DNA of 64,000 nt from Utricularia gibba (GCA_002189035.1 NEEC01000002.1:5642001-5706000); one strand, 5' to 3'; numbered from the stretch's first letter, positions 2,968-64,000 are shown. Program-made: numbers and translations. Notes: a model not told the origin generated them from the sequence alone.

Positions 2968-3255
2968 TCTACGGGGCTCTTCTTGAAATACCCTGGTAAA
3001 ACTGACCAAGCGATTTGCTTCGTACCTTTACCAGACCCATGTTTCAGTTATGTGAGTGCTGCATCGTACTTTCAGATAATCTGGTTCTGTATTCTTCAGG
3101 AATTCTAAGAAGCTTCTTCTTTTCTTAGTGAACTTTGAGATGCATGGATGCCGTTGGCACACCCCAACACTCCCAAAGTTGTGCTCCTTCCCCAGGCATA
3201 TCAACACCATCAAGTCCAGCTCTCCACATTTGCCTGGTCCATCCCGTCTCCTATT

Positions 3256-7272: not shown

Positions 7273-7399
7273 ATCATAGTTTATTACGACTAAACGCATC
7301 TACATATAATGATTGGAATAATGGTTCTTGAAAGCAACCATATTGAAAATATAAAAAATAAATAAGTTCTACTAGCAATTAATTAAAATCATTCAAACC

Positions 7400-9400
7400 A
7401 GAAAATATCAAATTCATCAGACTATTCTACAAGTGGTAAATTCATTCCTCAATCTATCTTGTTGTGTATTCTTGTAAGATGCTATTGACCAATAATAGTG
7501 TGACAATATGTAGGTTCATGGTATAAGCTCTAACCTCGATAGGATACATAGGTATTAGAATCAAGAAGTCTGAAAACTTTTTCACTATTCATTTGCCACA
7601 AAACGTGCAATACATTGAGACTAATTATGAGATCATCAGCACTTACCTTCACCTTTTCAGCATAAGGACCATGCATAAGTCATTGCATTTTTTGTTTGAA
7701 TCTTTTTAAGGTACATTATCAACTTTCTTAGATTATAGGTTGCTCCAGTATTGTAAGTCATTTGCTTAAATATTTTGCTACCAAATTTTTTTGTTGAAGT
7801 TGGAAACATAATGATACAAATACCAAAAGTGAGCTAAATGACCTTCTTAAAATCCAACATAATTGCTCATAGCTATAAGCATGCCTCCAACTCTATCTGA
7901 GATTATGCTTGTCTTACCTCAACAAAAAAATTACTCATTCAGTAAATTTATAAACCAAAGATATGTATCTTTACTCTTCTCGTCAACAAATACATAGTCT
8001 AGCAATAAGATGTGACCATCTCGATCCTTAATAGTGGTTGCGAGCAACTTGTGATCATAATGTCCATATAAAAAAGTAGCATCTACTATAATAACAAGCT
8101 GGAAAAACGTGAATGCTTGAATAAAGAGACTATAGGTCCAAAAACATGATATGGATTTTATGGTTCCCTCCTACGACAATGAGAAAACAGTCCCATGAAA
8201 CCATTGTACTTGAATTAACCTACATGATTACCACAAATAATATAAGTAGTTTTTGCATTGATAATTCTCATGTTCCATAGACCAAATTAAAAGCAAGTTG
8301 AGCACAATACCATGCACGTTCATAAGTAATCTTCTTTTGATATTTTTCAAAAATACATTTTTGAGAATTTGCAATCTTCATCTCTACAACAAATAAAAGT
8401 TATTAAAAATTTAAATTATCTAAAGAAATTTAAAAAATATTTAAATTATACATCAATCTCTATGTGTAGTAATATGCATTAGTTCATATCCGATGAATAA
8501 ATCAAAAAAGTTGCGATGTTGAACTTCATCTATTATGCCATGCAAATATGTGAAACGTCATAGACCAATATTTGTCAAACTCTATCACGTGCAAATTGTA
8601 TAATCCTTAGGTGTCAATAACATTCAAAATCCATATTAGTATGAGCACATTTGCCCTTCCAGAATTCAAGCTAATTAATGGGAACAATGAATTTATATTT
8701 TCTTTTTATATGATAGTGGGCAACACAATATTGGGAATGGACTTTACTAGCAAATGCATTTTTCTTGTTCAACACATGTAACTTCTCATTGTACCACCTA
8801 TATTTACCACCATATTTAAGTTCTTTGAGCACAAAAGTGTTTACTAATTTTTTTTGGAAAGGGGGTACTCTTCCCTCACATAACATTCTAGAGAATTGTT
8901 GAGAGCAAGATTAAGGTAATCATATTGCACAAGGTGCCTCAATTATAGTCTATGGTGTTTCATCCTTGCAAATATTCTTTGAAGGGACTTTAAAATCATT
9001 ACTCGAGTCAATATCTCCACAACATCATCAAAGTTGACCACATCTTAAAAAAAATCAATGATAATATTTTCATACATTTACACTTAACATCTTTAAAATT
9101 ATCTTCTAAGGGGAATCCTTTAGTTACGTTCACACTAGGGTTGTTATCATGCCTTAAAGATAATGATAATTGAAGACTCGGAGATACATCTACAATACAA
9201 TTAATTATTATAAATATAAAAAATGGATAGTTCTTAACATATGTAATAAAACAAATACATGCATAATTGACATCCGGCATATTGTTGCAAGTCCATAAAG
9301 GAGTATGCAAACTTTCAACAAATTGATATTTTTGTTGTTCAATGTCATGTTACTTGAATATAGAGAATCGGATGACATTCCAAAAAATTGAAAAAATACA
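7400..9400 (-). mobile_element. Degenerate Mutator-like (MULE/MuDR) transposase
   Basis: Minus-strand fragments FASKVHSQYCVAHYHIKRKY, ITYERAWY and LVIIVDATFLYGHYDHKLLATTIKDRDGHILLLDYVFVDEKSKDTYLWF match MuDR/MULE transposase motifs. Boundaries approximate. Confidence 0.75.
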
Positions 9401-10187: not shown

Positions 10188-10522
10188 CATGATCATGAAA
10201 ATGGTGACTCCACAACACGATCGCTGTTTAAATTTGAGTAATTTTATTGTTAGAAGCAGACTGATGCTAGAAAGGAGCTTGTCTTACATGGATGAAACCA
10301 TCAAAAATAAGTGTGCATAAGTTGTCTGAGATTCAAGGCCGTGTAAGTTCTTTGCAAGTTGTTTATACAAAGTCTAATACGCCAACTAGTCCAAACATTA
10401 CTCAAGAACCTACATGCTTGATCACCAGTCCAAAACACTACTCAAAATGCTAAACTTTTTTGTGAGTGGATCATGAAGTCTGCATCCTTTATTCTCTTCT
10501 GAATACAAGGCAGGGCTAATAG
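10188..10522 (-). other. Host flank downstream of Copia A, homologous to about 53163-53500
   Basis: Reverse complement aligns with 53163-53500 at roughly 85-90% by eye. It begins with the second TSD copy (CTATT, plus-strand AATAG 10518-10522). Confidence 0.85.
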
Positions 10523-10666
10523 TGAAGAGTTTTGTGTTCAAATCTAATTTTGAAAATGAAATGGGAAAATGAGAGAACAAGAACGGCAGACATGTTTTGC
10601 CAAAAAAGCTCCTCTCACTAACTAGGGTTTTTGATACAATTTAAATATGTCCCATAATTCTTGCAA
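10523..10666 (-). mobile_element. 3' half of the Copia A 3' LTR
   Basis: Matches LTR positions 3431-3574. On the minus strand it ends ..CTCTTCA followed by TSD CTATT. Confidence 0.9.
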
Positions 10667-11076
10667 TGACTTATGCATGGTCCTTATGCTGAAAAGGTGA
10701 AGGTAAGTGCTGATGATCTCATAATTAGTCTCAATGTATTGCACGTTTTGTGGCAAATGAATAGTGAAAAAGTTTTCAGACTTCTTGATTCTAATACCTA
10801 TGTATCCTATCGAGGTTAGAGCTTATACCATGAACCTACATATTGTCACACTATTATTGGTCAATAGCATCTTACAAGAATACACAACAAGATAGATTGA
10901 GGAATGAATTTACCACTTGTAGAATAGTCTGATGAATTTGATATTTTCTGGTTTGAATGATTTTAATTAATTGCTAGTAGAACTTATTTATTTTTTATAT
11001 TTTCAATATGGTTGCTTTCAAGAACCATTATTCCAATCATTATATGTAGATGCGTTTAGTCGTAATAAACTATGAT

Positions 11077-13184
11077 TAAGCTTGTACGTGGGCTGGTTTT
11101 GGTTTGGTTCCTACCGGACCCATAGCTGACCCACAGAAATTTTTAAGAATCTAGAACTGAAACTAAAACTACAGTTCTTGTACGATTTCGTAATTTTGTC
11201 TTGGTTTCAGGTAAAACCCTAAGATCTGACAATCACATTTCAAAATTTTACATTAATCTATAATAAAAACAAATACTCAATAGAAAAATATTAGTATGTA
11301 AAATCAATTTTTCAAAGAAAACAAGTAATTTAAAAACTAAAGTTACTCAAAAATATCATAATTTAATTAATTAATAAAACTTTCAAAATGGTATTCTCCA
11401 ACCTTTTCAAGTTCATCGTCAATATTCTCTCCATCATCATTTTCATCAAAACTTTTGTATTGTTTCCCACCTAATACACATAAAAAGAATGGTTAGTAAA
11501 TAAAAAATACAATATTAAAAATAAGTATATTTATCTCCAATTTCATCCTACAACGATACACGAGTACACATTAATGCTTCCAATATATCTTCACTAAGTC
11601 TACTATGTTAAAGGATAATAATGTTCATACCCACAGTAAATGCAAATTCAAAGGCCACGGTAGATATTGGAATAGCTAAAATATCATTAGCTATATTTTT
11701 TAATATAAGATATGAATCTCGATTAATGGACCACCATCCAAAAACATTGAAATTTTCCATTTATGACAAAATCAGCTCCTTCAAGTACCAATCAATTTCT
11801 AATTCATTAGAGTTATACATAACAAATTCATTTGTCACAAATTTATTATATAATAGCATTGAACAACACGTAGAGTAAGAGGATGAACCAATATTACCAT
11901 TTATGAAGTTAAAACCATAATTTTCTTTATTTGTAAATGAATGTACAGAACTTGAAATATAAATTGTATAATATTTCAATAGCTTCTAACAATTTTTCTG
12001 CACTTTCTCAATTTTCAAATTAACAGTGATCCTATCATAAATTTTCTGAAAATAAAATTGAACAAGTCTCATATTATATCAAGAGTCCAAAAGTGCTACA
12101 ACACTTAAAATCAAGTGACAAGAATCCCAATATTTGGAAAATTTTTCATGCATCATTGTTACCAAAGTAGAAATCATACAGTTTTCACTTCTTTTCTATT
12201 CATCAAACTTAATCCTTATATCACAAACTATGGGAAAGAACTCATTTGAAGTGCATAGAAGAGTATGCAAAAACATAAATGTTGCATTATAAAAAACTTT
12301 GAATTTATCACAAATCTTTGCTACTTTATCTCAATCATCATCATTAAACACATATTTATACATATTATCCATATATGTAAGATGTGAAAACACTTCTCTA
12401 TAATTTATGATTGTCTCAAGCATTAGAGATATAGCATTCCATTATGTACTACAATCAGATGATAATTTTTGATTAAATGTAATCTTACACTGATTTGTAG
12501 TATAATCCAATTTTTCTACCCTTTTTGATGAAGCTTTCGAGAACAATACACTTTCACGGATGCATTGTATTGATTCCTTAATCATATTTAAGCCATCCTA
12601 CACAATTAAGTTCAGTGAATGATCATGACAACACATATGTAGTATATTCCCATCAAGGAGTAAGTCTTTTCTTGAGAGTTTGTTCAATAATGATGCAACT
12701 ACAACATCATTTGCAGAACAATTATTCATTTTAATTATGGAAAACTTGTTGTCTATATTCCAATTCACAAAAGAGTTAAGGAATACATCAAACATCACTT
12801 CACGGATGCAGGAACATATACAAATATGTTGAAGATAAATAACTAAATAAGATAGTCAAATATAATGCTTTTAAAAATCAAACATTTTAATTGAACATTA
12901 ATAGAAAACTCTTCAAAATCCAACTATCATCAATAAAATATCCAATAATGGCCATGAATCCTCTTTTACTATTATTTGATGTCAACATGTCAATAGTAAT
13001 AACAATGCAATCGTTCATTTTTTTAACATCAAATAGTAGTTAGGTTTGAAATTTACATACATATTCATGATATCCCTTCTAAGAGAATGTCTAGATATCA
13101 TATTAAATGTAGGGTTTAAAGAATAACAAAATCTTCTAAAGCCCACATGATCCAACATATTTATAGGATAATTGTGTAAAATAA
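11077..13184 (-). mobile_element. hAT fragment, mirror copy
   Basis: Mirror of 5165-7272, with identical ORF fragments. Confidence 0.85.
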
Positions 13185-15094
13185 TAGATTTGATAAGTTT
13201 GTCTCATGAAATGTTTTTAGATTTTTGATGCTGTGATGCCTGAAACGTTTGTGCCATAGAGTGGACTGTTTAGAAACAGAAAAGCCACTTCATGAGTATT
13301 TGCTACCTTGATTTGATACAGATTGTTATTGAGCTTCAAGACCATTGTACATCTGTTGTTTATTGGATCAAGGATTCTGATGCCTTCATTTAGTAGCTCC
13401 ACTTGAAAGCCTTGAGTCTGTAATTGTCCCAAGCTTAATAGATTCTGTACAACCTGAGGGGCATAGCACACGTCGTTAATGATAAAAAAGCCGCCAGACA
13501 CTGGTAGATGTATTGTTCCCTTGCCCAGAATTTTTGTTGCATGGCCAGTAGATCCCCATACATTTCTGTTTGCACTCCCCTTCATTTCAGAGAACATATG
13601 CAGATCTGTGCAAATATGATAGGTAGCTCCACTGTCAACATACCAGCCTCTGTTTGCATTGTGCATGCTAGACATCAGGGCGTATTCAGCATCACATGCA
13701 TCTAGTATGGAGATCATCGGTTCTCCTAAATACATAAAGGATGCAGCTTGGTCAGTATTTCTATCCTTGGTTTCTCAATCATTGGAGTTTTGGATTTCTT
13801 TATCGAGCACACCTTTTCCACATGTCCCTTGACATTGCAATACTCACATAGGGCTTCGGGATGATACCAGCATACCTTTGGTTTGTGAAAGAACCTTTGG
13901 CAATGAATACAGGGAACAGCATTTTTCTGCCAACAATTTTCTGAGGCATGGCCACTCTTTCCACAATGAATACAGCCATTTGACTTAGTGTGCTTGTTGG
14001 AGGGCCCGACATCAGGTTTTGAAGCATAGGGAGCCTTAGAGAACATGGAAGATTCAGCACTGAAGTCAGAGGTAATTCTGTTTTCTCTAATTTGCATCTG
14101 TTTTTCAGAGGCTTGCAACTCACCGATAAACTCAGGAAATTTCATAGGTTCTTCATGTCCCGTAATTTTCCGTAGCTTTTCTTCAACCTCAATGGTGCAC
14201 AATTTTGCTTCAAATCTTTCAGGTAGGCTCATCATAGCCTTTTCTATAACCTTGAAGTCTGCGAGGTCTTCTCCCAGACTCGGATTTCATTAACCAGCTT
14301 TGATGTTCTTTCATAATACTGTTTTAGATTCTCTGAATCCTTCATAATGTTTCTCTCAAATTCTTCCATCAGACTTCGACGAGTATATTTTTGCATTTTG
14401 TCTTCACCTCCATAGAGCTCTTGAAGTTTGTCCCAAATTTTCTTAGGCGTATGACAGTCAGCAATCTTGTTGAATACCTCTTCGGTGAGTGCGGCATGTA
14501 GGGCTGTGATGGCTGCATACTTATTTTCCTCAAAAGTTTCTAACTTTTTGAGTTCAGCTGCTGTAGGATTTTCAGACAGGTGAGGTTCACTTACCTCCTT
14601 GGAAATCACTGTCCAGTGCTTCTTGCACTTGAGGTAAGGTGTTATTTTCCTAACCCATCTATGATAGTTCTCGCCAGAGAAGACAAGAATCACTGGAGCG
14701 TTTTTCTGATCACTGAACGACATCACTTAAGATGTGGATTTACAGGTACACGCAGGAACGATCGCTCGGATACCATGAAGAGTTTTGTGTTCAAATCTAA
14801 TTTTGAAAATGAAATGGGAAAATGAGAGAACAAGAACGGCAGACATGTTTTGCCAAAAAAGCTCCTCTCACTAACTAGGGTTTTTGATACAATTTAAATA
14901 TGTCCCATAATTCTTGCAAGAATTATGTCTGCAGGCCCACTAAAGGCCCAAAAACATAAGAAAGCCTGAAGATGATCAGAATTTTTCTGTAGCTGAGTTC
15001 TTTAGTTCTTGAGCGCATCAGACTTGCACCCATATCTATTTCCTCAGAGCTACATTGACCCTTGTGGTTCTCCAGCTGAGGAAGGCTTCCAACA
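13185..15094 (-). mobile_element. Copia A 5' part, mirror copy (5' LTR 14776-15094)
   Basis: Mirror of 3256-5165. The protease ORF 13217..13735 is continuous here. Confidence 0.9.
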
Positions 15095-15382
15095 AATAGG
15101 AGACGGGATGGACCAGGCAAATGTGGAGAGCTGGACTTGATGGTGTTGATATGCCTGGGGAAGGAGCACAACTTTGGGAGTGTTGGGGTGTGCCAACGGC
15201 ATCCATGCATCTCAAAGTTCACTAAGAAAAGAAGAAGCTTCTTAGAATTCCTGAAGAATACAGAACCAGATTATCTGAAAGTACGATGCAGCACTCACAT
15301 AACTGAAACATGGGTCTGGTAAAGGTACGAAGCAAATCGCTTGGTCAGTTTTACCAGGGTATTTCAAGAAGAGCCCCGTAGA

Positions 15383-15754
15383 TCAGACGGATGGATTGAC
15401 TGGAGATTCACGTTCATCACCAACTCCGGTGGAAGAAGAAGGAGCACCAAGATCCCTATCAACAGATTTGCGGGACGGGAGAGGATTTGAACCCTTGATC
15501 ACCCAACCGAGGGCGAAGAACGAGAGACCGGCGATAATAGCAGTGCCCCACGCGTGAGAATACCATTTACTGTACTGTCTGATAGCGAATCGCCACTGCT
15601 CTCTCAGAGTCGCCGCGTCAGGGTTCACCGTTTCCGGCGGATTGGGATAACGGTGGCCCTGAGGAATTCCTCTCCCTCTGCCACTCGAGACGTCCGGCGG
15701 AGAGGCTTTCTGGGCCGACTCAGAAGAGGAGGAGTTCCGCTGGGAGTCGCTCAT
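15383..15754 (-). CDS. Small TM protein, copy 2
   Basis: Translation identical to 2596..2967. Confidence 0.8.
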   Translation of the reverse strand: MSDSQRNSSSSESAQKASPPDVSSGRGRGIPQGHRYPNPPETVNPDAATLREQWRFAIRQYSKWYSHAWGTAIIAGLSFFALGWVIKGSNPLPSRKSVDRDLGAPSSSTGVGDERESPVNPSV

Positions 15755-16507
15755 CAAGATCGGTCGAACCCTCCGTCACATCCCAGATACCGCAGGATAT
15801 TACTGCTGGCCCGAAGTGGTGTACATTCGATTCGAGAGCAAGTTATGGGCCTGTACCTTCAAGGCCCATTTTAAAAGAGCCACATCATTCCAGGCCCACC
15901 TTATTGCATAAAGTCCAGTCCATCACTGGAGCATACCAGGAAGGGATTTCGGGCGTTCACACTTACTGAACGCGATTTTTCAAATTGTGTGTCAAAATGA
16001 TTTGTCAAGGTCAGCTTCTGTAAAATCAGACATCAAAAACGAAAAGAATGAGCGCATTTTTAAAATTTTTCTTGTTAATTTATAATTAATCTCTTATTTA
16101 ATCATTAAATAGTTATTGAATCAATTTAATAAATTTTGAATTTAATAACAGAATCTTAATTTATTATTTTAATACACAATGGTTACAAATTAAAATTTTT
16201 AAATATTAAAAAGAATCAATTTAGTAAATTATGAAAAGAGAACAATTCCTAGTTACGCCAATTTCGAGCATGAGGAAAAGAAAGTGTCATCTGGGCATTG
16301 AATTGTTCAGATTAGGCATTTCTCCATCTTGGAGGAGAGACCCACACGCGGCCAGGGACATGTCGTACTTTGAATTCAGCAACACGTCAAGAAGTGGACG
16401 CTTTCCGTTCCCAGATTCCTAAGATTCCTATAAATTCACAGACGCCGGGCAGCCAGTGGATCATTCAGCTTGAAGAAGAAGAAGAAGAACAACAACAACA
16501 ACAAAAC

Positions 16508-17810
16508 ATGGGTTCCATGTCTCGGCTCTTGCTCCTGGGTGCTGTTATTGCTATGGTTTCTGGTCTTGTCTCCTCACAGAGTAATCGTAATCCCGTGTGC
16601 CCATTTCCCTATCTTTACCATTTCGGCGACGGCGCCACTGACGTCGGAAACTCCGTCCTGGTGCAACCCTGGGGACCATCGCTTCCGGCCACACGTCCGC
16701 CCTACGGCCGCACATATCCAGGCAGCCCCAACGGGCGGTGGTCCGATGGTCTCGTAGATTTCGACTTCGCAGCCTTCGACTTCGGATTCCCGGAAGTCGT
16801 ACCGTACCTATCGGAGAGGTCCAACTCCAGCAACGGCGTCATCTTTTCGGTTGCCAGAAGTCCGGTGATGGATCCCGGCTTCTTCTCCCGGAGAGGCATC
16901 ACCATTCCACCTTACGCAGTTTCCCTCGACGCCCAACTCGAATGGTTCAGAACCCATCTGCAATCTGTCTGCGGATCTTCATCTGAGTGCATCGCGGATC
17001 GACTAGCCAACTCGCTGGTGCTGCTGGGAGACCTCGAAGCGAACGACATCGGGTACGCCCTCATGGAAGGGAGGACCCTTCAGGAAGCGCAGTCTTTCAT
17101 CGGCCCCATCACAAGGGAACAAATCAAGACCACAAGGGTACATAAAGCCATTTTCTTTGCTCGAATCATGCCTGCAAGTTGCATTTGTTGATGCTAACAC
17201 CACCGCCTGACTTGCAGGAGCTCATCAGAATGGGTGCCAGGCTCATCGTCATTCCGGGCAGCGCTCCCCTTGGATGCTTCCCGTACATCCTGAACGCTCT
17301 GCCCTCCAACGATCCCACGGCGTATGATCGTTTGGGATGCCTCAGCAGCGTGAACAGGCTGATCACTTTGAAAAACAACTATCTGCGCCAAGCCATCAAC
17401 AGGTTGGGCCAGGAGTTCCCCAACGTCACCCTCATCTACGGGGCCTTCGACGAGGGCTTCATACAAGTTCTCGACAGACTGAATCAAGGCAAGTCCATGA
17501 GCCCTTATTACAACTATTACAGAAAGAGATTCTTATTGGAAAGAATTAACATATTCACTTGCGACTGATTGCAGAAGGCCATGCGGACACTGCCCTGCAA
17601 ACTTGTTGCGGGATCGGAGGCAGATACAACTATAGCAGCAACAGGTTCTGTGGGACTGCGGGGGTGCCCGCGTGCTCGAATCCCGAGCATCATATGTTTT
17701 GGGACGGCATACACTTTACGCAGGAGATCGCGGTCCGGATCGAACAAAGCCTCATTCAACCAACGCTGGCGGCTCTCAACTGCACAGCCCTACCAACTGC
17801 CTTCTCTTGA
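16508..17810 (+). CDS. GDSL esterase/lipase-like protein, copy 2 (Ser-to-Gly in block I)
   Basis: Exons 16508-17137, 17218-17488 and 17575-17810. GT-AG then GC-AG introns. 378 aa. Confidence 0.9.
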
Positions 17811-18855
17811 GGAACTGAAATCCATTTTTTTCTTTTTTGAGCTCTCAAGTGAAGAGCCTTTGTCTCATACATTCTTTGATTCGTTCTAATTAATCAGCAA
17901 ATGTAAGCTCATTTGTTCTAAAGCCATATGAACTTCTTTTGTATTGGATGTAACATTATCCTACCAACAGACGATGTTTGATGGAACGAGACGCTGGGGA
18001 AGAATTTCAATTGTTTTTGCGTCAAATTAAGTTATAAAGTGAAGACAATCACTCATCTTTCTCACCTTTCAGAACAATTATTTGATTTAGGAAGAACTAA
18101 AAAATGTCTCACGTATTTTGCTTTGATTTTTGCATTTCTTCGCAGTTGCTCTTGACTATGAACAGCGCTATATTTGCTTTTACTTTTATTTGTTGCTACA
18201 TGAGTCGTGTGTTTCCAGGAACCCCATTCTTGGGTAGTGTTTCTGTAAGTTGATCTGTTTTTCTTACAACTTTGGCGCTCCTTTTCAAACCTATTTCTTT
18301 TCTCAGTACAAACTTTTGCTCTTTTTGCTACTTGTTGGATCTTGGGGAATGAAGAGAATAAGCAGTCAATCACCCTTGAGTGAAATGAGAACTAAATGGC
18401 CGTAGGTCAAGGAGAAGCTTCACGTGTGGAGACACTCCCACCCTAGAAGTCTGCTGCAATTTATCTTGGTTTTACTTTCAACTTCTTGAGCTTGTTAACT
18501 TCCCTGTTGTTGAAATTTGCAGTTTCTGTTCTGATCGTAACTCACTGCAATACTCAGCTAGGCAAGATTTTACCCAACAACAGAGTGTCTGGAAGATGGT
18601 GCACTGATAAAGTATGAACAGAGCAAATGAAACAGAGTGAAGGCAGATGGTACTTAGATTCTCAGAAAAAACTTGTCCAAATGGATACAACGGAACAGAA
18701 CTTGAATAAACTAATGTGCAACAACTAAAAATATGGCTTGCGCAGCAACAAGAATCTCAGGGAAGTGGCAGAGAAGTGGGATGCTGACTCCCATGTGTGT
18801 GGTCAGCTTGGCTTGGCTGTCAGGAAAAACAGCCATTTCCTTGCCAGTATGGTTG

Positions 18856-19446
18856 CTAAATCACCAACTTCGAAATGAAACGATCCAGAGCGGGAATCAG
18901 AGACTGAAAGACCTTGTAATAGGCAGTCTGAGTCGGGTGTACGCTGTCCCAAAACACGTACTTGGAGGGATCGCTGCACGATGGGGCTCCGAAACTACAG
19001 GGCAATGAGATTCCGGCGACTTCCCCGCCACAGCAACCGCGGTTTACGACGTTGAAACCTGGAGGAGCATAACAGAACGAAGGCCTTGATGCAAAAATCT
19101 AAAAGCTATAATGGTAAGAGTCTACTCCAAGGAAGCATGCAATTTATTTACAGTAGTTAAAAAGGTTTTCCCAAAGAGATGTTACCGTAGAGGTGAGGCC
19201 GTTTGATGATCTCCATCACCGGATTAAAAATGTCGAGGTACAAGACGTTGGTTGTGTAGCCTCGAAACGACGCCACTTTAGCTTGGAGTTGGCGAGAGTA
19301 GTCTCTTGCAACGTTCGATATCCACTCCAGGCAAGTTCTCTGAGTCGAAGTGAACCCCGACTCAACGGTGATCACTGCCGGCACACACCCGAACGGCGGC
19401 ATTCCGACCACAAGGATGTTCCGAACCCCCAACTTCAAAAGCCCCT

Positions 19447-19489
<43 letters not shown>

Positions 19490-20293
19490 ATTTTTTTCCC
19501 ATCCATAGAGAAAGCGTATTGGGTGGCTTTACCCGGATGAGGTTCTCCTCCTGCTGAAGAATGAACTTCTGGTAAGCATCAAGGGTGTAAGTTGCGTTTC
19601 GTATCGGCAACGGGAAGAAGTTGGCAATGAAGTCATTTGATCCTGCGCTGATCACAGCAGAAGATCTCCTCAGCAGCCTCTCAGTCTTGGCCTTTCCAAT
19701 GTAACCCTCCATTCTCGACTTATAGTCCTTGAAGTAGCCCAGTTGCGCATCCATGGAAAGCACACTCTGCGGACCGCGATTCACAAAACATGGTATGAAA
19801 AGCCGATCAATGAACATAAGATAGTTACCGAGATGGTTGCTGTCAGGGGATCGAAGCCCGTACTGGCAGAGGCAAAGCACACTCCAGTTTTGAGGTCATC
19901 CACGGTGAGGCTGGAGTCCAAGTAGGGAGGAATCAGCTCCTTGATCCCAAAGTATGAAGCTGCAACACGTGTCACCAAGCACATTGTTTGTCAGTGCAAT
20001 CGCATTAAATCAGAGTGGTTATGCTTCCACTGACCGATGTAATCAGTGACGAGTTTGCCGTTGGTGAACCTTCCGGAGGCAACTTTTCCGGGGAAATCTT
20101 TTCCGTAGGGAGGGTAGTTGCTCCTCGAGGTGGTGAGGAGGAAGTTATTGTTGCCAGAGTCGACGGTGGAGTCCCCGAACACGAACAGCGCCGTCATATT
20201 CGTGCGCAGGCTCCGGCATTCCGCCGTGGGCGGCGACACAATGTGGAGCATAAGCAACCCGAGAGCCCCATGGAGGAATACCTTGGGAGACAT
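18856..20293 (-). CDS. Canonical GDSL esterase/lipase (361 aa, 5 exons)
   Basis: Exons 20035-20293, 19829-19959, 19533-19766, 19186-19444 and 18856-19058 splice in frame. FGDSTVDSGNN, GRFTNG, GSND, PFGCVP and FWDSVHPT; Ser, Asp and His all present. Confidence 0.93.
19449..19488. repeat. A40 homopolymer (T40 directly before the intron 3 acceptor)
   Basis: 40 consecutive A, followed on the minus strand by GCAG|GGG. Confidence 0.95.
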
Positions 20294-45872: not shown

Positions 45873-45950
45873 GTGGGAGTGTCTCCACAGGTTAAGCTTC
45901 TCCTCTTTCTCCTTTTTCTAATGTAAACTTATTGACCTATGGCCATTCAG

Positions 45951-48900
45951 TGTAGAGTTTTTGGATTCATGAGCTGGAGGACTCAAAGGATTCAAGAACA
46001 TAATAGGCGGCAAAAACACTGTTTCTTGTCTTATAATACAATAAGTAGGGCTCGAATGTTCAAGCACATGTGTGCATGTGACAAGCAAAAGGGTTTTAAT
46101 ACAAATTGGAATTTTTTCTCAGTTTTCCTAAACTTTCTTCAGCTGTCTTCGTCTTCAATTCACTAGCATTCCATTCCTCATAAGTGACTGACACTCCCCC
46201 CATCGATGATAGAGGTAACTCTCGATAAATCTGCTACCTTGCAAACTCCAATTTTTAGTCTGTTTTCTTCAAATTTTTGTCTCCTGAGAGGTTTAGTCAA
46301 TATTTCGTCCAATTGACTTTTTGTGGATAAATATTGAATAGTGATCTTCTTTTTCACATCATCTCGTATGGCATGGAATCTCATGGATATATGTTTTGCC
46401 TTGCTGAATTGAGAAGAATTTTTTGCTATTTGAATAGCATACTTGTTATCCACTCCTAATGGTATGAGTTCTTGTTTAAACCAAATTTCCTTGATTAGTT
46501 GTCTCAATCAGAGGCATTGATTTGAAGCAAGTGAGGCACATATGTACACAACCTCTGTTGTAGATTGTGCTACTATAGTTTGGCATTTGGTTGATCAAGA
46601 GAAAAGATTGTTGTTCAGGCACATGAGATATCCACTAGGTACTATTATTGTTTGCACTTCCCACATAGTCGCTGTCTGAGTATGCACTTCGAGTAGGGTA
46701 GCTTCCTTCTGAGTATGTGTGGAACAATCCATACGATAATGTTCATTTTACATAACTCAACACTCTTTTCACATGTTAGTAGTGACTCATTTTTGGACTT
46801 TTTATATATCTTGACAAAATGCTTATGTTGTAGTAGAGATCAGGCAGAGTGTGGCTAAGGTAGATTAAGCTTGCTACCAAGCTTTGAAAAAGATTTTGAT
46901 CACAGTCAGCATCATCCATTGAATTTTCCATTTTCTTTTCAGTGTCCATTGGAGAACGGCATCCATTTGTGTCTATGAGATTAAATCTTTAACAAACAGT
47001 GTTTGTTCTCCATGTTCTTTTGTGAATCCTTCTATCTCAAAGAAAACATTGATCCTTTCATTTCAAACTCTTGGTACTTGTTTTAGTCCATAAAATATCT
47101 TCTTAAGTTTTAATATTTTTCTTTCTTTTCCTTTTATTATAAATCCTTTTGGTTGCTCACAATAAATTTCTTTTGTAAGTATCTAATTCAAGAAGGCGAT
47201 TTTAACGTCCATATGATGGACTTTCCATCTTTGACGGGCTGATATGACAAATAGCAACTATATGGTGTCAAACCTTGCAATTGGGGCAAGGACATCACCA
47301 TAATTAAGTCCAACAATCTATGAGTACCCTTTGGCGACAAGTCTGACTTTATATTTATTGATGGTCTCATTAGCATTTACTTTGATTTTATAGATCCATT
47401 TTAGTCTGATCAGTTTAGTAATCAAATGTGCCTGAGTATCCACTAATTCCCATGTATTATTTGCTAGAATTGAATCAATTTCACTTTGTATTGCAACCTT
47501 CCATTTTTCATCTTTGCTTGCATCTAAATATTTTGTAGGATCTGATATTACATAGCAGGACATAACATCAACAAATAGAGCAACTGTGTCCTCATTTTTA
47601 TCTTCCATTGCGCTTGAGGTATATAGTGACTCATCTTGACATAGATTTGACAGTGTTCTTTGTCTTCTTACTTATGGTTCTTTATCCCAATCATCATCAT
47701 TTGTTTCATTTGATAACATTTCAGCATCTGTAGCATTTGTGAATGAATTTGTGAAATTTTCTTCCTCTAGAATAGCTTATGATATTATAGTATCCATTAT
47801 TTCTAGATTTCTATTTGAGTTTTTGCTTCAGGCATTTCATATCCATTTGTGTTGAGGTAGTTCCTTTCCGTTTCTCTATTTTCTTTTGCATTTTCTTCAC
47901 GAATATTCTATTCATGTTCAAGAATGTCATTGGATGAATTTCTAGCAAAAATATTAGGATGTTGATTTGATCGTGGTTCTTGAGACAGGTGTGACCTTTT
48001 CTCCAAATTGGTTACTATACACATAGAATTAGCATTATTCCACGTACAACAATTTTCTTCATAAAACATTACATCTATATTGATGATGTTTTGTTTCAGA
48101 AAAATAGAGTCTATATTCTTTGGTCACAAGACTATATCTGATGAAAATTCCTAACCTTGTTTGTTCATCAAATTTTGTTCGTTTTTCTTTTGGGATATGT
48201 GCGTAGCATATAGAGCTAAATATTTTTAAGTAACCAATAGACACCTTTCTTCCTAACCAAAGTTTCCATGTGGTTTTCACAGTCATAGCTCTTGAGGGAA
48301 GTAAGTTTAACAAATATACTGTTGTTGAGACTACTTCTACCTAGAAAACAATTGGCATATTTTTTTTTAAACAGCAAACGTCTTGTCCATATTTAATATT
48401 GTTTTGTTTTTCCTTTCACTAACTCCATTCTGTTTTGGTGTGTAGGGTGCTGTGAGTTTATGAATGATGCCTTCATTGTTGCAATATTGACTTAATAATT
48501 TTGGTAAAAACTCCCCTCTATTGTCAAATTTTAATTTCTTCGGTTTATGACCACTCTATTTTTCTAATATTGCCTAGAAATGAACCATATTTTTTGTAGT
48601 CATCAATAAATATAAAAAATATTTATTTCCACTTAAGGATGGCTCCTTGAATGGTCCATAGAGGTCTATATGCACTAATTCCAATTTTTCCTTGCTTTTG
48701 GTTGTACTCATATGGAAGGGATGTTTGGCTGATTTTTCTTTTTGGCATGTGCTGCAGCAAAAATCTGAAAATTTGATACCTGATAGTTCTTAAGTGATTC
48801 CATCTTTCTGCAAGAGTTTTAGATTATTCATGACATAATGACCAAATCTTTTGTGCTAGAGGTGTGATTTTTTATTTACTGAAAGTGCAACTTCTTTTAA

Positions 48901-49912
48901 TCTTTCCAACTGTATTTGATATAGGTTGTTTAATCTCATCGCTGATGTTGACTTGGAATTTTTTGAATTAGTAATTTTAACTCCTTTCTTTTTTTAGTTC
49001 CACCTTAAAGTCATGTTTTTGCAGTTGACCAAGGCTCAATAGATTTTACATGACTTGAGGAGCATAGGATACATTTTCAATTTTCAGAAATCTCCCTACC
49101 ATCGGTAAGTGAATGATACCTCTTTCCAATATTTTAGAGGCATGGTCAATGGAGCTCCATACTTTTCCTTTTGGTAGTCTTGATAATTTAATGAAAAATC
49201 TCAATTCTATACAAATGTGACTTATAGCACCACTATCAACATACCATTTTTTTTGTTTGATCTGATTCACATGTCATCAATGCAAACTCAGTATCACAAG
49301 CATCTAAAAATGATATTTCTGCATCATTTGTATATGATAGCATAGTTGTTTGTTTCCCATTCTTCAAATGCTCTAATTCTCCATTTTTATGTCTAGTCAG
49401 GCATACCTTTTCCACATGTCCCTTCTCTGACTTGTGAAAGGGTTTGAAGCTGCTCCAATAGTTCTTAGACGTGTGATTCATTTTGTTGCAATAAAGGCAC
49501 CCCTCTAACCTTGAATTTGAGATATTTGTGGAATTGTCCTTTGCCTTTCTTTTTTGGTCAATGGCTTCTTTTGAGTATAGAATAGATTCACTTTTGAGAG
49601 TTGTAGAATTGCACTACTCTCTGATTGGTATCCTTTTTTCTAATGATTGTAGCTCACTTATAGACTTTGAGAAGGTCATTTTTTCCTCATTGCCAAACAC
49701 CTTTCTCATTTTCTCTTCAAGAATGCAATAGGCGGCAAAAGCATTGTTTCTTATCTTACAACACAATAAGTCGGGCTTGAGTGTTCAAGCATATATGTGC
49801 ATGTGATAGAAAAAAGGGTTTTAATACAAAATGAAAATTTTCCCTGAACTTTCTTCAGCTCCCTTTGTCTTCAATTCACTAACGTCCCATACCTCATGAG
49901 CAACTATCAACA
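45951..49912 (-). mobile_element. Ty1/Copia element B, degenerate and internally deleted
   Basis: 3' LTR 45951-46193 after PPT GGGGGAG. 5' LTR remnant about 49728-49912. TSD TTCAG/TTTAG (45946-45950, 49913-49917). Protease WYVDSGAISHI, integrase, RT and RH fragments. Confidence 0.88.
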
Positions 49913-52808
49913 TTTAGTTCTCATTTCACTCAAGGGTGATTGACTGCTTATTCTCTTCATTCCCCAAGATCCAACAAGTAGCAAAAAGAGCAAAAGTTTG
50001 TACTGAGAAAAGAAATAGGTTTGAAAAGGAGCGCCAAAGTTGTAAGAAAAACAGATCAACTTACAGAAACACTACCCAAGAATGGGGTTCCTGGAAACAC
50101 ACGACTCATGTAGCAACAAATAAAAGTAAAAGCAAATATAGCGCTGTTCATAGTCAAGAGCAACTGCGAAGAAATGCAAAAATCAAAGCAAAATACGTGA
50201 GACATTTTTTAGTTCTTCCTAAATCAAATAATTGTTCTGAAAGGTGAGAAAGATGAGTGATTGTCTTCACTTTATAACTTAATTTGACGCAAAAACAATT
50301 GAAATTCTTCCCCAGCGTCTCGTTCCATCAAACATCGTCTGTTGGTAGGATAATGTTACATCCAATACAAAAGAAGTTCATATGGCTTTAGAACAAATGA
50401 GCTTACATTTGCTGATTAATTAGAACGAATCAAAGAATGTATGAGACAAAGGCTCTTCACTTGAGAGCTCAAAAAAGAAAAAAATGGATTTCAGTTCCTC
50501 AAGAGAAGGCAGTTGGTAGGGCTGTGCAGTTGAGAGCCGCCAGCGTTGGTTGAATGAGGCTTTGTTCGATCCGGACCGCGATCTCCTGCGTAAAGTGTAT
50601 GCCGTCCCAAAACATATGATGCTCGGGATTCGAGCACGCGGGCACCCCCGCAGTCCCACAGAACCTGTTGCTGCTATAGTTGTATCTGCCTCCGATCCCG
50701 CAACAAGTTTGCAGGGCAGTGTCCGCATGGCCTTCTGCAATCAGTCGCAAGTGAATATGTTAATTCTTTCCAATAAGAATCTCTTTCTGTAATAGTTGTA
50801 ATAAGGGCTCATGGACTTGCCTTGATTCAGTCTGTCGAGAACTTGTATGAAGCCCTCGTCGAAGGCCCCGTAGATGAGGGTGACGTTGGGGAACTCCTGG
50901 CCCAACCTGTTGATGGCTTGGCGCAGATAGTTGTTTTTCAAAGTGATCAGCCTGTTCACGCTGCTGAGGCATCCCAAACGATCATACGCCGTGGGATCGT
51001 TGGAGGGCAGAGCGTTCAGGATGTACGGGAAGCATCCAAGGGGAGCGCTGCCCGGAATGACGATGAGCCTGGCACCCATTCTGATGAGCTCCTGCAAGTC
51101 AGGCGGTGGTGTTAGCATCAACAAATGCAACTTGCAGGCATGATTCGAGCAAAGAAAATGGCTTTATGTACCCTTGTGGTCTTGATTTGTTCCCTTGTGA
51201 TGGGGCCGATGAAAGACTGCGCTTCCTGAAGGGTCCTCCCTTCCATGAGGGCGTACCCGATGTCGTTCGCTTCGAGGTCTCCCAGCAGCACCAGCGAGTT
51301 GGCTAGTCGATCCGCGATGCACTCAGATGAAGATCCGCAGACAGATTGCAGATGGGTTCTGAACCATTCGAGTTGGGCGTCGAGGGAAACTGCGTAAGGT
51401 GGAATGGTGATGCCTCTCCGGGAGAAGAAGCCGGGATCCATCACCGGACTTCTGGCAACCGAAAAGATGACGCCGTTGCTGGAGTTGGACCTCTCCGATA
51501 GGTACGGTACGACTTCCGGGAATCCGAAGTCGAAGGCTGCGAAGTCGAAATCTACGAGACCATCGGACCACCGCCCGTTGGGGCTGCCTGGATATGTGCG
51601 GCCGTAGGGCGGACGTGTGGCCGGAAGCGATGGTCCCCAGGGTTGCACCAGGACGGAGTTTCCGACGTCAGTGGCGCCGTCGCCGAAATGGTAAAGATAG
51701 GGAAATGGGCACACGGGATTACGATTACTCTGTGAGGAGACAAGACCAGAAACCATAGCAATAACAGCACCCAGGAGCAAGAGCCGAGACATGGAACCCA
51801 TGTTTTGTTGTTGTTGTTCTTCTTCTTCTTCTTCTTCAAGCTGAATGATCCACTGGCTGCCCGGCGTCTGTGAATTTATAGGAATCTTAGGAATCTGGGA
51901 ACGGAAAGCGTCCACTTCTTGACGTGTTGCTGAATTCAAAGTACGACATGTCCCTGGCCGCGTGTGGGTCTCTCCTCCAAGATGGAGAAATGCCTAATCT
52001 GAACAATTCAATGCCCAGATGACACTTTCTTTTCCTCATGCTCGAAATTGGCGTAACTAGGAATTGTTCTCTTTTCATAATTTACTAAATTGATTCTTTT
52101 TAATATTTAAAAATTTTAATTTGTAACCATTGTGTATTAAAATAATAAATTAAGATTCTGTTATTAAATTCAAAATTTATTAAATTGATTCAATAACTAT
52201 TTAATGATTAAATAAGAGATTAATTATAAATTAACAAGAAAAATTTTAAAAATGCGCTCATTCTTTTCGTTTTTGATGTCTGATTTTACAGAAGCTGACC
52301 TTGACAAATCATTTTGACACACAATTTGAAAAATCGCGTTCAGTAAGTGTGAACGCCCGAAATCCCTTCCTGGTATGCTCCAGTGATGGACTGGACTTTA
52401 TGCAATAAGGTGGGCCTGGAATGATGTGGCTCTTTTAAAATGGGCCTTGAAGGTACAGGCCCATAACTTGCTCTCGAATCGAATGTACACCACTTCGGGC
52501 CAGCAGTAATATCCTGCGGTATCTGGGATGTGACGGAGGGTTCGACCGATCTTGATGAGCGACTCCCAGCGGAACTCCTCCTCTTCTGAGTCGGCCCAGA
52601 AAGCCTCTCCGCCGGACGTCTCGAGTGGCAGAGGGAGAGGAATTCCTCAGGGCCACCGTTATCCCAATCCGCCGGAAACGGTGAACCCTGACGCGGCGAC
52701 TCTGAGAGAGCAGTGGCGATTCGCTATCAGACAGTACAGTAAATGGTATTCTCACGCGTGGGGCACTGCTATTATCGCCGGTCTCTCGTTCTTCGCCCTC
52801 GGTTGGGT
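49913..52808 (+). repeat. Third, direct-orientation copy of the GDSL/small-gene unit (near-identical tract)
   Basis: Offset 49959 from the left arm. Identical ORF track except E7Q4 vs E6Q5. Divergence begins at 52809. Confidence 0.95.
50499..51801 (-). CDS. GDSL esterase/lipase-like protein, copy 3 (Ser-to-Gly)
   Basis: Exons 51172-51801, 50821-51091 and 50499-50734. Same protein as copies 1 and 2. Confidence 0.9.
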
Positions 52809-52932
52809 AATCAAGGGTTCAAATCCTCTCCCGTCCCACAAATCTGGTGATAGGGATGTGGGTGCCCCTTCTTCTTCCACCGGAGTTGGTGATGAACATG
52901 TGTCTCCAGACAAGGTCAATCCATCCCGCTGA
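52555..52932 (+). CDS. Small TM protein, copy 3 (different C-terminus)
   Basis: 125 aa. Identical N-terminal two-thirds; ends HKSGDRDVGAP..DEHVSPDKVNPSR. Confidence 0.8.
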   Translation: MSDSQRNSSSSESAQKASPPDVSSGRGRGIPQGHRYPNPPETVNPDAATLREQWRFAIRQYSKWYSHAWGTAIIAGLSFFALGWVIKGSNPLPSHKSGDRDVGAPSSSTGVGDEHVSPDKVNPSR

Positions 52933-54621
52933 TCTACGGGCTCTTCTTGAAATACCTTGGTAAACTGACCAAGCGATTTGCTTCGTACTTTTACTATACC
53001 CATGCTTCAGTTATGTGAGTGCTTCCGCTCTTCTTAGTGAGCGTTGGGATGCAATTGTACTCAACCCGGTTGGCACACCCCCAGCACTCCCAAAGTTGTG
53101 CTCCTTCCCCAGGCATATCAACACCAAGTCCAGCTCTCCACATTTGCCTGCTCCATCCCGTCTCCTATCAGCCCTGCCCTGCATTCAGAAGAGAATAAAG
53201 GATGCAGACTTCATGATCCACTCACAAAAAAAGTTTAGCATCTTGAGTAGCGTTTGGACTGATGATCCAGCATGGAGGTTCTTGAGTAGTGTTTGGAATG
53301 GTTGGTGTATAAGACTTTGTATAAAAAACTTGCAGAAAACGTACACGGCCTTGAATCTCAGACAACTTGTGCACACTTGTTTTTGCTAGTTTCATCAATG
53401 TAAGACAAGCTCCTCTCCAGCATCAATCTGCTTCGGAGTAACAGTAAAGTTACATCATTTTAAACAGCGATGGTGTTCTGGAGTCACCAGTGTGATCATG
53501 ACTCTAAGTTGGAAGAAGAGTAGCGAGAGAAGAGGGAGAAAACCATTCAGATGATATGCACAGCAGTGGCTGTTTGAGAATAGTTGGTCCCCTTACGAGA
53601 AGGGTCAAAATCTTGTAGGTTTTCGAACAGATGCGAATACAATTGACGTTCTGTAATAAGGTTACCACGTGTTCCGTGATTTGTTCGAAACTACCCGGCC
53701 CGACTTCCGATTTCGATTTCTCCTTCCTTGTCCCTCCACGGACAGTAGCAACGATCTTCGTTGTCGTCCGGATGATTGAGGCGATCACTTGGGCATCCAC
53801 CACCGTTAATTTCTCGCTATTTTTCTCGTCTTCTAACCCTCAGCGGTAGACCCTAAAAGCTGAATCCGGCGAGTTTCCATCGTTTCAGGTAACTCACTAT
53901 TTTGATTGTTGAGAGGAAACAGCCTTCGTCTTTGCGATTGTATTTTCTTCTCCGTTGGGTAGATTGACAACAAGGAAGAAAAAAAAAAACCCAGTGAAAC
54001 CCAAATTCGAGTTAAATCGAAATAGGAGGCAGCTGTGAATCTCAATATTTTTGACTAATAAAACCAAATCCAGCAACCTAGATCCAGAATTCATGGTCCT
54101 GTAATTCCGATCCTTATAAATCCGACCGAGAACCCTGTGGGGATGGGCTTTTGCGATTCTCAGTATCATTGGAATGCGCATTCTGGAGTGGTTGAAAACT
54201 TACGTGCATTGTGCTTTCGTTCAATTTATTTGAATGAATTGCGAACTGTCAGGGCTTTTTAGTACCCAAAATGGCTTCTTTGAATGAATTTTGTGTGAGT
54301 TTGAATCAGGAATGGCAAATACCTATTTTAAACATGGGAAGGTTTACGCTTTTGTAATATAAAAACCTGTTGCTTGTTATCCAAAAGCAAAACTGTTGTT
54401 GGAAGGTTTTCTTGTTGAGTGAAAAATGCGTTTTTTCGTCTGTTTTTTCCCCTGCTATCTCCATTCTCTCTACAAAAGAAGCTTTCTAAAGTCAGTTGGT
54501 AACACTAAAATCATGTTGTATCGATAAGCTTATCTAAGAAGCTGGCTATTGTTGTTCACTTGTTTTACTGTTCATGATTATCATCATCTGTTATCTTGTT
54601 GCCACCATAGTTTCTCGCAAG

Positions 54622-55407
54622 ATGTCTGGACAAAGCCAGCGTTTGAATGTTGTTCCTACTGTAACCATGCTTGGAGTTATGAAGGCTCGATTGGTTGGAG
54701 CAACAAGAGGGCATGCACTGCTCAAGAAAAAGAGTGATGCTTTAACAGTGCAATTTAGGACAATTCTCAAGAAAATTGTGTCTACAAAGGAATCAATGGG
54801 AGACATCATGAAATCATCATCCTTTGCCCTCGCTGAAGCCAAGTATGTTGCAGGAGAGAACATTAAGCACATTGTTCGTCAAAATGTGCAAAGTGCAACT
54901 CTGAAGGTTCGATCACATCAAGAAAATGTCGCAGGCGTGAAACTCCCCAAGTTTGAGTATTTTATTGATGGGGAAACCAAGAATGACTTGACTGGGTTGG
55001 CAAGAGGAGGACAGCAAGTGAAATCCTGTCGTGCAGCATATGTGAAGTCAATTGAACTACTTGTTGAGCTTGCCACTCTCCAAACGTCATTCCTGACTCT
55101 TGATGAGGCAATCAAGACCACAAATCGCAGGGTGAATGCCTTAGAAAACGTAGTGAAACCAAGGATAGAAAATACAATTAGTTACATCAAGGGAGAGCTG
55201 GATGAATTGGAGAGGGAGGACTTCTTCAGACTGAAAAAAATACAAGGTTATAAGAAGAGAGAGATTGAGAGGCAGCGTGAGGCTGCCAAGGCATACGCTG
55301 ATGAAAAATTCGCTGAGGAAATATCTTTGCAGAGGGGTGTTTCTCTTAGTTCAGCACATAACATGTTATCTCTTGCCGCGGAAAGGGATGAAGACATCAT
55401 CTTCTGA
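54622..55407 (+). CDS. VHA-D: V-type proton ATPase subunit D (261 aa, intronless CDS)
   Basis: MSGQSQRLNVVPTVTMLGVMKARLVGATRGHALLKKKSDAL...TNRRVNALENVVKPR...LDELEREDFFRLKKIQ. Likely 5'UTR intron about 53889-54610. Confidence 0.97.
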   Translation: MSGQSQRLNVVPTVTMLGVMKARLVGATRGHALLKKKSDALTVQFRTILKKIVSTKESMGDIMKSSSFALAEAKYVAGENIKHIVRQNVQSATLKVRSHQENVAGVKLPKFEYFIDGETKNDLTGLARGGQQVKSCRAAYVKSIELLVELATLQTSFLTLDEAIKTTNRRVNALENVVKPRIENTISYIKGELDELEREDFFRLKKIQGYKKREIERQREAAKAYADEKFAEEISLQRGVSLSSAHNMLSLAAERDEDIIF

Positions 55408-59128: not shown

Positions 59129-59933
59129 CACCCTTAATACATTTCAAAAATATATTTATATTATCATATTAAATTATAAAATAATTTATTCAATTAAATT
59201 TTATCATATACTATTTAATACGTTGAAATCTATGATATAATTTTATACTATATATATAACAGTTTTATAATCTAAAAATTAAATTTATTTATAGAATTTT
59301 AAAACTGATTTTATTTTATATAATTTGAATACAAAATTAAAAAAATAACACATCTCAGAATAAATTTATGTTTGAGAAAAGCATTTGATAATCACATTTA
59401 TTATTAAATAGCGAGAATTTTTTTCAAAAAAAAATATAACTTTAATTTTTATTTTATTAAAATCATTTCTAGAAAGTTTATTTTTGAGAACCAACACTAA
59501 ACAAAGCTTAAATTATATAACCCTGGCTTTTAAAAATCTTTTTAAATGTGAAACCCATATTTGTCTGGAATAAAATAGAAACGACCAGACCTTTTTTAAA
59601 AAAAAATTAAATTTTTGGTTCATGTTCAAAGCAAAATAACATATTGCGGTTGCCTTTTTAATTACTTTTACTGTTTTATACGAATATTTAAAATGAATTA
59701 AGACGAATAGGGTTGGTCTTGTCCTTGCCCAGACACCTCCTTCGGACAAGAAGGGATTGTGAGTAGTATGAAGTAGACTTAAATACCTAGTCAAAGCTCA
59801 TCGTTTAATGCCCCAGTTCCACTCCTATCCATCGCAAATCCAATTAATGCCCTAGCCATTGAACTTTTTTTTTCTTTTTTTTTTTTGTATTTTGGTTTGA
59901 GATGCAATGGCAAGAAGAATGATGCATCTGGGC

Positions 59934-61027
59934 TTAAACAGTCGGGTAGGATGCGTCCATGGCAATGCCGCACTTGCCTTCAGGGCCATCGAGGTTTCTG
60001 GGGAGCAAGACGTAGCCGTCGGATCCCCAGTCGGTGCCCATGAGTTCTTCACAATCCAGTATTGAGTGCCGTCGTTGGCTTTCCCGTACCCGACAACGGT
60101 CACGCCGTGATCCAGATCCTTGCCACAGGTTCCTGTGAAGACTCCACTGGAATATAGCTGGAAGTCTCTTCCGCTCGCGTCGATGGCCACCGACACCGGC
60201 TGGTTCGCCACCGCCTGCATCAGCGCGGCCTCGTTGTTCTCCGGAACCTCTTCGTAACCGGTGATGGTTGCTGCCACCATAGAGGCTATCAGTATGTTAC
60301 AGAATGATTGCGTGCCGGTGTAGGGGTAGGCGGATTCCGCGGTGATCCCGAATCTTTGGATGTATTGGAAGCCGTTGATCATTCGGCCGCCGTTGCAGCC
60401 GTAGTCCTGTGTTTCGCAGTTGAGCAGCTCTTCCTCCGACAAGGTCACCAGGTTGCCTGTTTTTATCTTGTAGATCCCCTCCACTGCCGCCACCGTCGAG
60501 AAAGCCCAGCAACAACCTACGCAGGAGACGAAGCTTTTTTTCATTTTTAACGATCCACCCACCACTGGTTAGCATCATCTTTACACTAATTTTTTTCTTA
60601 CCGCACCTCCCCTGGTCCTTGACCGGAGTAACGGCTCCCGATTCTCTCCAATCTACGCTCGCCGGAAGCGTCGCCGCCCAAGGCTCTCAGTCCAGGAAGC
60701 TCTCTTCCTTGTCACATTGGGCATTCTCTTGTACCCGTTCATGGAAGCTCGAAACTCCTCGTTCGTAAGATCCGCAAACTTGTTTGCAGCAAGCTTGTAA
60801 GGGCGCCCGGCTGCGTTAACGGAGTTAATGTACTCCACGTTACGCTTAAAGATAGCAAACCTCTGAGCCTTTTCAGCATCGTCCCTGTAGACGCGGCTGT
60901 GTTTAGCCATCCACCCCTCGTGCATTCTCATCATCCCGACGTCCAGAGTTCCCCCTCCGGCGTCCGCATTGTACGGAAGCGTGACCAGGAGCAGGACCAA
61001 GAAAGCGAGAAATAACTTGGACCCCAT
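59934..61027 (-). CDS. Papain-like C1A cysteine protease (SAG12-like) with two apparent 1-bp frameshifts
   Basis: Exons 60602-61027 and 59934-60516. Signal peptide, ERFNIN-type prodomain, DQGRCG/CCWAF, LDHGV and KNSW. One extra G in each of two GGG runs (60677-60679, 60037-60039) restores a full ORF ending ..DASYPTV*. Confidence 0.85.
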
Positions 61028-63579: not shown

Positions 63580-64000
63580 TTAGTACGGGGAAAGTGCCAA
63601 GAAATCTTCGATAAATCGGCCCAAGAAATGATCCGACGGTTCCTGTTTCAGCAGCGTTTTCCTACTCTTGGCTTTCAAATCTCTGACTTTGACTCGGATC
63701 GGATTTTCCAAATCCATCAGCTCAGTGATCGCAGTCCTGATTCTCTCCGCCGGAATAACCGTGCCGGAGTCACGGTGGTAATCGATCTTAATCTCCACGG
63801 CTATCTCGAATTCCATCACCAGCTGAAACGCGTTCGCCTGTTGTTCTGCTGCCAGGGGCCACGTCGCCATCGGAACACCGAACCAGACGCTTTCCAGGGT
63901 TGAATTCCACCCACAATGAGAAACGAAGCCTCCCACCGCGGGATGGGCTAAAATCGCCATCTGCGGCGCCCAACCGATGACTTTTCCCCTGCCCTTTGTT
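63580..64000 (-). CDS. UDP-glycosyltransferase, 3' part (UGT71-like), runs off the window
   Basis: PSPG box WAPQMAILAHPAVGGFVSHCGWNSTLESVWFGVPMATWPLAAEQ, then QANAFQLV..EIKIDYHRD. Confidence 0.93.
   Translation of the reverse strand, partial: TKGRGKVIGWAPQMAILAHPAVGGFVSHCGWNSTLESVWFGVPMATWPLAAEQQANAFQLVMEFEIAVEIKIDYHRDSGTVIPAERIRTAITELMDLENPIRVKVRDLKAKSRKTLLKQEPSDHFLGRFIEDFLALSPY

Follow-up and report, generated by a model that had tools for sequence, protein, structure and literature searches.

Three copies of one gene unit, in a 64,000-nt stretch of the Utricularia gibba genome (NEEC01000002.1:5642001-5706000, hereafter the window), share a tract of 2898 bp in which a single position differs, whereas the homologous DNA flanking this tract is about 10% diverged. 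The tract is probably the result of a recent ectopic (interlocus) gene conversion, in which part of one of two old and dispersed paralogous units was copied non-reciprocally onto the other. The three copies were identified by self-BLAST and repeat finding and are referred to as copy 1, copy 2 and copy 3 (c1, c2 and c3); all positions are window coordinates. Copies 1 and 2 form the arms of an inverted repeat:

1-7687, plus strand: copy 1, inverted-repeat arm, truncated by the window start
18349-10662, minus strand: copy 2, the other inverted-repeat arm

Copy 3 is located 31.5 kb beyond c2, in direct orientation relative to c1 and inverted relative to c2, and several LTR retrotransposons are present between c2 and c3. 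The arms of the inverted repeat (1-7687 and 10662-18349) are 7687 and 7688 bp long, are separated by a spacer of 2974 bp and show no substitution; their sole difference is the length of a run of G (GG at about 4830, GGG at 13518-13520). The outer end of the arms lies beyond the window start, where c1 runs off, and the inner breakpoint falls inside an LTR of a Copia element (Copia A, see below) at a 22-bp palindrome. The 64 kb of transposon-rich sequence are gap-free, with no run of N in the window, and an Rfam search of the window gave no match.

Homology between c2 and c3 is limited to about 3.7 kb, and the tract accounts for about 80% of this paralogous unit. The neighbouring genes are not shared: the gene for V-ATPase subunit D (VHA-D) is found beside c3, and a distant GDSL gene (18895-20188) beside c2. 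This second GDSL gene, on the minus strand, is arranged tail-to-tail with the GDSL gene of c2 and encodes a protein 33-47% identical to that of the tract gene (tblastn); no counterpart of it was found beside c3. The other genes recognized on the far side of c3 are a protease exon and a transferase fragment:

54622-55407, plus strand: VHA-D gene, intronless (PF01813, E = 5e-66)
59852-60565, minus strand: exon of a papain-family cysteine protease (PF00112)
63580-63960, minus strand: fragment of a UDP-glycosyltransferase gene (PF00201)

The limits of the tract in each copy were established by self-BLAST, repeat finding and a three-copy MAFFT alignment:

49911-52808 (2898 bp): tract in c3, one mismatch to c1 and c2
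15501-18398, reverse orientation relative to c3: tract in c2, within an inverted-repeat arm
1-2849, direct orientation: tract in c1, truncated by the window start and equivalent to 49960-52808 of c3

The only mismatch, at 51819, is a C in c3 where both c1 and c2 have a G; this base belongs to the 5' UTR of the GDSL gene, 18 nt before the start codon. It falls where the two repeat types of a compound microsatellite (51805-51840, minus strand) meet, directly upstream of the GDSL start; this microsatellite reads (GAA)7(CAA)4 in c3 and (GAA)6(CAA)5 in c1 and c2, and a mutation of this (GAA)n(CAA)n repeat posterior to the event is plausible. The tract contains 588 bp of 3' flank, the whole GDSL gene with both its introns, an intergenic region of 753 bp and codons 1-85 of a small gene. 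A first-pass annotation of the window had proposed a near-identical island from 49913 to 52808 in which the GDSL gene and its promoter are homogenized. The island is confirmed by the three-copy alignment and its end is exact, the true start being 2 bp further out; gene and promoter are both inside the tract, introns and intergenic region included.

Outside the tract, homology between c3 and c2 continues on both sides with a markedly different level of identity:

52809-53164, aligned with c2 15500-15096: right flank R1, 29 substitutions in 342 positions (8.5%; 91.5% identity) and 8 indels
53165-53523, aligned with c2 10522-10169: right flank R2, 47 substitutions in 353 positions (13.3%; 86.7% identity) and 4 indels
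45873-45947, aligned with c2 18441-18395: far-side flank, on the left, 3 substitutions in 47 aligned bases and a 28-bp indel

R1 and R2, which amount to some 700 bp and include the 3' end of the small gene, are contiguous in c3 and are parted in c2 by Copia A; the largest indels of R1 measure 54 bp and 6 bp, and weak traces of homology extend to the right of R2 up to about 53558. The far-side flank is made of two pieces (45873-45904 against 18441-18410, where 2 of 32 bases differ, and 45933-45947 against 18409-18395, where 1 of 15 differs), separated by a 28-bp stretch present in c3 only; no homology to c2 was found farther left. When the flanks are pooled, 79 of 742 positions are mismatched (10.6%) and 13 indel events are counted, compared to 1 mismatch in 2898 bp for the tract (Fisher p = 5.6e-55); at the flank rate, a stretch of 2898 bp would have no more than one mismatch with a probability of about 1e-139. 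The divergence of 10-15% initially reported is roughly correct, the flanks ranging from 6 to 13% in an estimate that rests on about 740 aligned bases, with only 47 bases on the left side.

The right edge of the tract is a step and not a gradient, as 9 mismatches are already present in the first 100 bp after 52808. No heterology is found at this edge and the first indel occurs 100 bp further on. In the small gene, 52809 falls on the third position of codon 85, and the change is synonymous. The first-pass annotation had described both the identity up to codon 85, followed by an abrupt shift to substitutions and indels, and a diverged far-side flank, and the alignments agree with it on these points. 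The left edge coincides with a transposon. Two Copia elements distinguish the copies:

45948-49909, minus strand: Copia B, a decayed Copia-like LTR element, in c3 only
10523-15094, minus strand: Copia A, in c2 and mirrored in c1, absent from c3

Copia B is flanked by a 5-bp target-site duplication (CCATT at 45943-45947 and ACATT at 49910-49914), and the identity between c3 and c2 starts at 49911, the second base of this duplication. At the corresponding position c2 carries an empty site, which reads GGCCATTTAG. The two end repeats of Copia B share about 80% of their bases (32 transitions and 9 transversions, K2P 0.24), and no ORF of at least 120 aa is present in the element; an old insertion directly adjoins a tract with 99.97% identity. 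The transversion divergence of Copia B (4.3%) is similar to that of the flanks (3.8% and 6.5%), which indicates that the element was probably inserted not long after the split of the paralogues and long before the homogenization. Copia A has a perfect 5-bp target-site duplication (AATAG at 10518-10522 and 15095-15099), and no difference is seen between its LTRs at the 139 bases that can be compared; it is therefore young and uninformative on the age of the paralogues. The use of independent insertions of transposable elements as a proof of age thus holds for Copia B and fails for Copia A. The LTR of Copia A at 10523 was observed to match only up to the palindrome, and the element was consequently rearranged at this place when the inverted duplication formed.

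The divergence of the tract amounts to 3.5e-4 (Poisson 95% interval 9e-6 to 1.9e-3) and that of the flanks to about 0.09-0.15 (K2P). From these values and assuming equal rates, we infer that the homogenization took place in the last 0.3% or so (at most about 2%) of the time elapsed since the split. The tract combines an identity far above that of its flanks, diverged homology on both sides (thin on the left) and identity of the non-coding DNA as well. The presence of diverged homology on both sides implies that the two loci had the whole unit before homogenization. As the introns, the 3' flank and the intergenic DNA are identical, selection cannot account for the identity of the tract, and purifying selection is ruled out. 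A mobile element or a fresh duplication of 2.9 kb is likewise ruled out, as homology, although diverged, is present to the left and to the right and the Copia B site is empty in c2; so are duplicated haplotypes in the assembly, since homology covers only about 3.7 kb and the flanking genes differ.

Two divergent genes and the region between them are affected by the tract. Their predicted structure in c3 is as follows:

50499-51801, minus strand: GDSL-like gene, predicted model with three exons, 378 aa
51801-51172, minus strand: GDSL exon 1 (predicted)
51091-50821, minus strand: GDSL exon 2 (predicted)
50734-50499, minus strand: GDSL exon 3 (predicted), including the stop codon
51802-52554: intergenic region of 753 bp between the divergent genes, wholly within the tract, putative shared promoter region
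52555-52932, plus strand: small single-exon gene, 125 aa, one predicted membrane helix

Intron 1 of the GDSL gene is 80 nt long with GT-AG borders; intron 2 (50735-50820, minus strand, and the same in c1 and c2) is 86 nt long with GC-AG borders and the donor AAG/GCAAGT. The GC donor is required because the conserved CCGIGG block must stay in frame, and no GT donor of intron 2 giving an intact product was found. The exons were scanned one by one: the ORF of exon 2 matches PF00657 (E = 1.8e-5, 25.5 bits for a cut-off of 23.6), exon 3 matches the GDSL profile weakly (14.1 bits) and exon 1 gave no profile match. In block I, which reads FGDGATDVGNS, a Gly is found in place of the nucleophile Ser, and the GDS motif is therefore lacking, while the Asp-x-x-His block is retained (WDGIHFTQ). 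Judging from its sequence, the tract gene is a member of the GDSL/SGNH esterase-lipase family by descent and probably not a conventional hydrolase.

The right end of the tract falls inside the small gene. Codons 1-85 of the c3 gene are identical to those of c1 and c2, and codons 86-125 are diverged, with 7 residue changes and an indel of 2 residues; as predicted in the first-pass annotation, the c3 small gene is, at the level of its sequence, chimeric relative to the other copies. The encoded protein belongs to a family of membrane proteins of about 105-130 aa present across flowering plants (for example Arabidopsis Q8LBX3), in which residues 36-94 form a strongly conserved core and the tails vary; nearly all of the best named matches of the encoded protein come from Lamiales. 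The proteins of both copies (52555-52929 and 15386-15754) are only 57-62% identical to orthologues from other Lamiales, which resemble each other far more, and in both of them the core is intact and the tails are strongly altered. The differences between copies in the tail of the gene are mostly non-synonymous. The small genes may be supernumerary copies under relaxed constraint, a better conserved one being located elsewhere. When aligned with the Lamiales orthologues, the c3 tail is the less derived one, as it has kept the terminal Arg and the full length.

A database protein, P0001 (179 aa, from a contig of 1291 bp), carries the junction between tract and tail of the c2 type. It corresponds to the small gene of c2 (15245-15781, minus strand) with a TGA stop read as Trp and 9 extra residues at the N-terminus. 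P0001 was probably predicted under the wrong genetic code from a short, independent contig that belongs to the same species, and it supports the c2 junction independently. In a collection of 15 billion proteins, the c2 type is present whilst the c3 type of the small protein is absent, and neither the two small proteins nor VHA-D gave an exact match. The lack of the c3 type counts weakly against conversion, the collection being incomplete.

These features would be explained by a limited number of steps. An old duplication would have produced two units of about 3.7 kb, each composed of the GDSL gene, the divergent promoter and the small membrane-protein gene, and the units would then have drifted to about 10% substitution divergence, with indels. 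A Copia element would have been inserted long ago beside c3. Much later, homologous repair would have copied about 2.9 kb of one unit onto the other, presumably in a single event. One end of the copied segment would have run to the place where homology stops, at the junction of the 4-kb Copia B, and the other would have been resolved in the small gene after codon 85; in one unit, the last third of the small gene would thus differ in history from its first two thirds. The event that produced c1 from c2 by inverted duplication would be equally young or younger. The position of the left end at the transposon junction, noted already in the first-pass annotation and matched by the empty site of c2, would fit what is generally known of recombination, with heteroduplex or branch migration halted by a heterology of 4 kb; this end is also close to the natural end of the paralogous unit. 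The proposal of a recent ectopic conversion made in that annotation is the most economical reading of an island with a sharp edge, identical non-coding DNA and diverged homology on both sides.

Interlocus conversion operates mainly above 80% identity and becomes rarer as identity approaches 80% (PMC3924818). Most estimates of its mean tract length lie between 50 and several hundred bp (PMC3924818); a tract of 2.9 kb is long by this measure, and one has to postulate an event of the long-tract or gap-repair type or else a small number of overlapping events. This length also speaks for a long-running concerted evolution, in which many conversions, possibly favoured by selection for dosage, would have maintained the identity of the GDSL gene and of its promoter, the flanks having escaped long ago. 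We consider this unlikely. The tract is common to three copies and exceeds the length typical of a single event (PMC3924818), and the HMA4 genes of Arabidopsis halleri offer a precedent in plants (PMC3749932). However, varied end points should leave a gradient or a mosaic, and at the right edge the full divergence of the flank is reached within 100 bp, with no heterology that could fix the end point; furthermore, a single informative difference is present in the whole tract. A clean step at the right edge with no visible heterology fits a single event better than many. The concerted evolution of the pseudo-enzyme suggested in the first-pass annotation is accordingly speculation, as one tract with one sharp edge is compatible with a single event and shows no selection. 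A more extended version, to which we also give little credence, is that recurrent long-tract conversion prevents the three copies (two arms of a palindrome and a dispersed third one) from diverging in the serine-less GDSL gene and in its promoter, possibly through selection for dosage, and that the event is still segregating and creates functional variation. If this were true, the variation would consist of three GDSL promoters with the same sequence and of a small membrane protein that is chimeric, and the family could serve as a model in plants for concerted evolution linked to a palindrome, with transposons as time markers.

The identity of the tract might also be overstated or false if repeat collapse or polishing had written one consensus at all three copies. 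A protein of the c3 type was not found in public collections, and the neighbouring 7.7-kb inverted repeat is perfect except for one difference in homopolymer length, which is typical of consensus errors. Such an artefact is nonetheless very unlikely. An assembler able to keep R1 apart would have no reason to merge a neighbouring tract that was truly just as diverged (8.5% and indels). The left edge falls, to the exact base, on a biological landmark, namely the target-site duplication that borders Copia B, and the window contains neither gaps nor N. At most, consensus errors would have brought the identity to 99.97% from, say, 98-99%, and the step would still require a conversion. The tract should be far shorter than typical long reads.

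It is highly improbable that an unequal crossing-over, an inversion or a template switch (BIR/MMBIR) made a hybrid copy in connection with the formation of the inverted duplication. In favour of such a model, c2 and c3 are paralogues in inverted orientation at a distance of 31.5 kb, the adjacent inverted duplication (c1 and c2) is very young and has a breakpoint in an LTR palindrome, and the outer flank of c1 lies beyond the window. However, crossing-over between inverted copies gives two hybrids without making them identical to each other. Between direct copies, an unequal event would have doubled the DNA in between as well as the upstream flank, and the outer flank of c2 has no counterpart upstream of c3. 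Since c2 itself has the tract, a site free of Copia B and a right flank of its own, a non-reciprocal patch is needed in any case.

Ectopic gene conversion, the reading that we favour, has well-described parallels. As in other cases of interlocus conversion (PMC3924818), part of a unit was homogenized non-reciprocally, the identity changes in a sharp step, coding and non-coding DNA are identical and an end point inside a gene yields a chimeric copy. Unlike in most of them, the tract reaches 2.9 kb compared to means of 50 to several hundred bp; here, the flanks are about 10% diverged and a transposon junction defines one of the ends. In plants, ectopic conversion between paralogues is documented for the triplicated HMA4 genes of Arabidopsis halleri (PMC3749932) and for the Arabidopsis IGMT cluster (PMC12042744), where, as here, three or four linked copies are involved and a reduced divergence of paralogues was ascribed to this process. 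Those studies relied on population samples and described recurrent events with links to selection or to traits, whereas the present case concerns one assembly and one apparent event, read from sequence alone. The signal of conversion at HMA4 was found in coding sequences; in the tract the promoter is homogenized too. As with the palindromes of the human Y chromosome (PMC4233959), c1 and c2 form a near-perfect inverted repeat, and inverted copies can exchange sequence without rearrangement. In contrast to the conversion between arms of Y palindromes, the event described here involved a palindrome arm and a third copy 31.5 kb away, concerned part of the unit and joined partners that were already well diverged. 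The tract is a further instance of a known process and reveals no new mechanism.

Combined, the data provide a clean and datable example in plants of one gene copy overwriting another. The old transposon fixes one edge of the tract and shows that the identity is secondary and not the trace of a young duplication. Dating the duplication from the sequence of the genes would be wrong by about 300-fold (K = 3.5e-4 in the tract compared to about 0.1 in the flanks). The three GDSL copies and their promoters are indistinguishable by short reads or in expression data, and for annotation the small gene of c3 is to be treated as a chimera.
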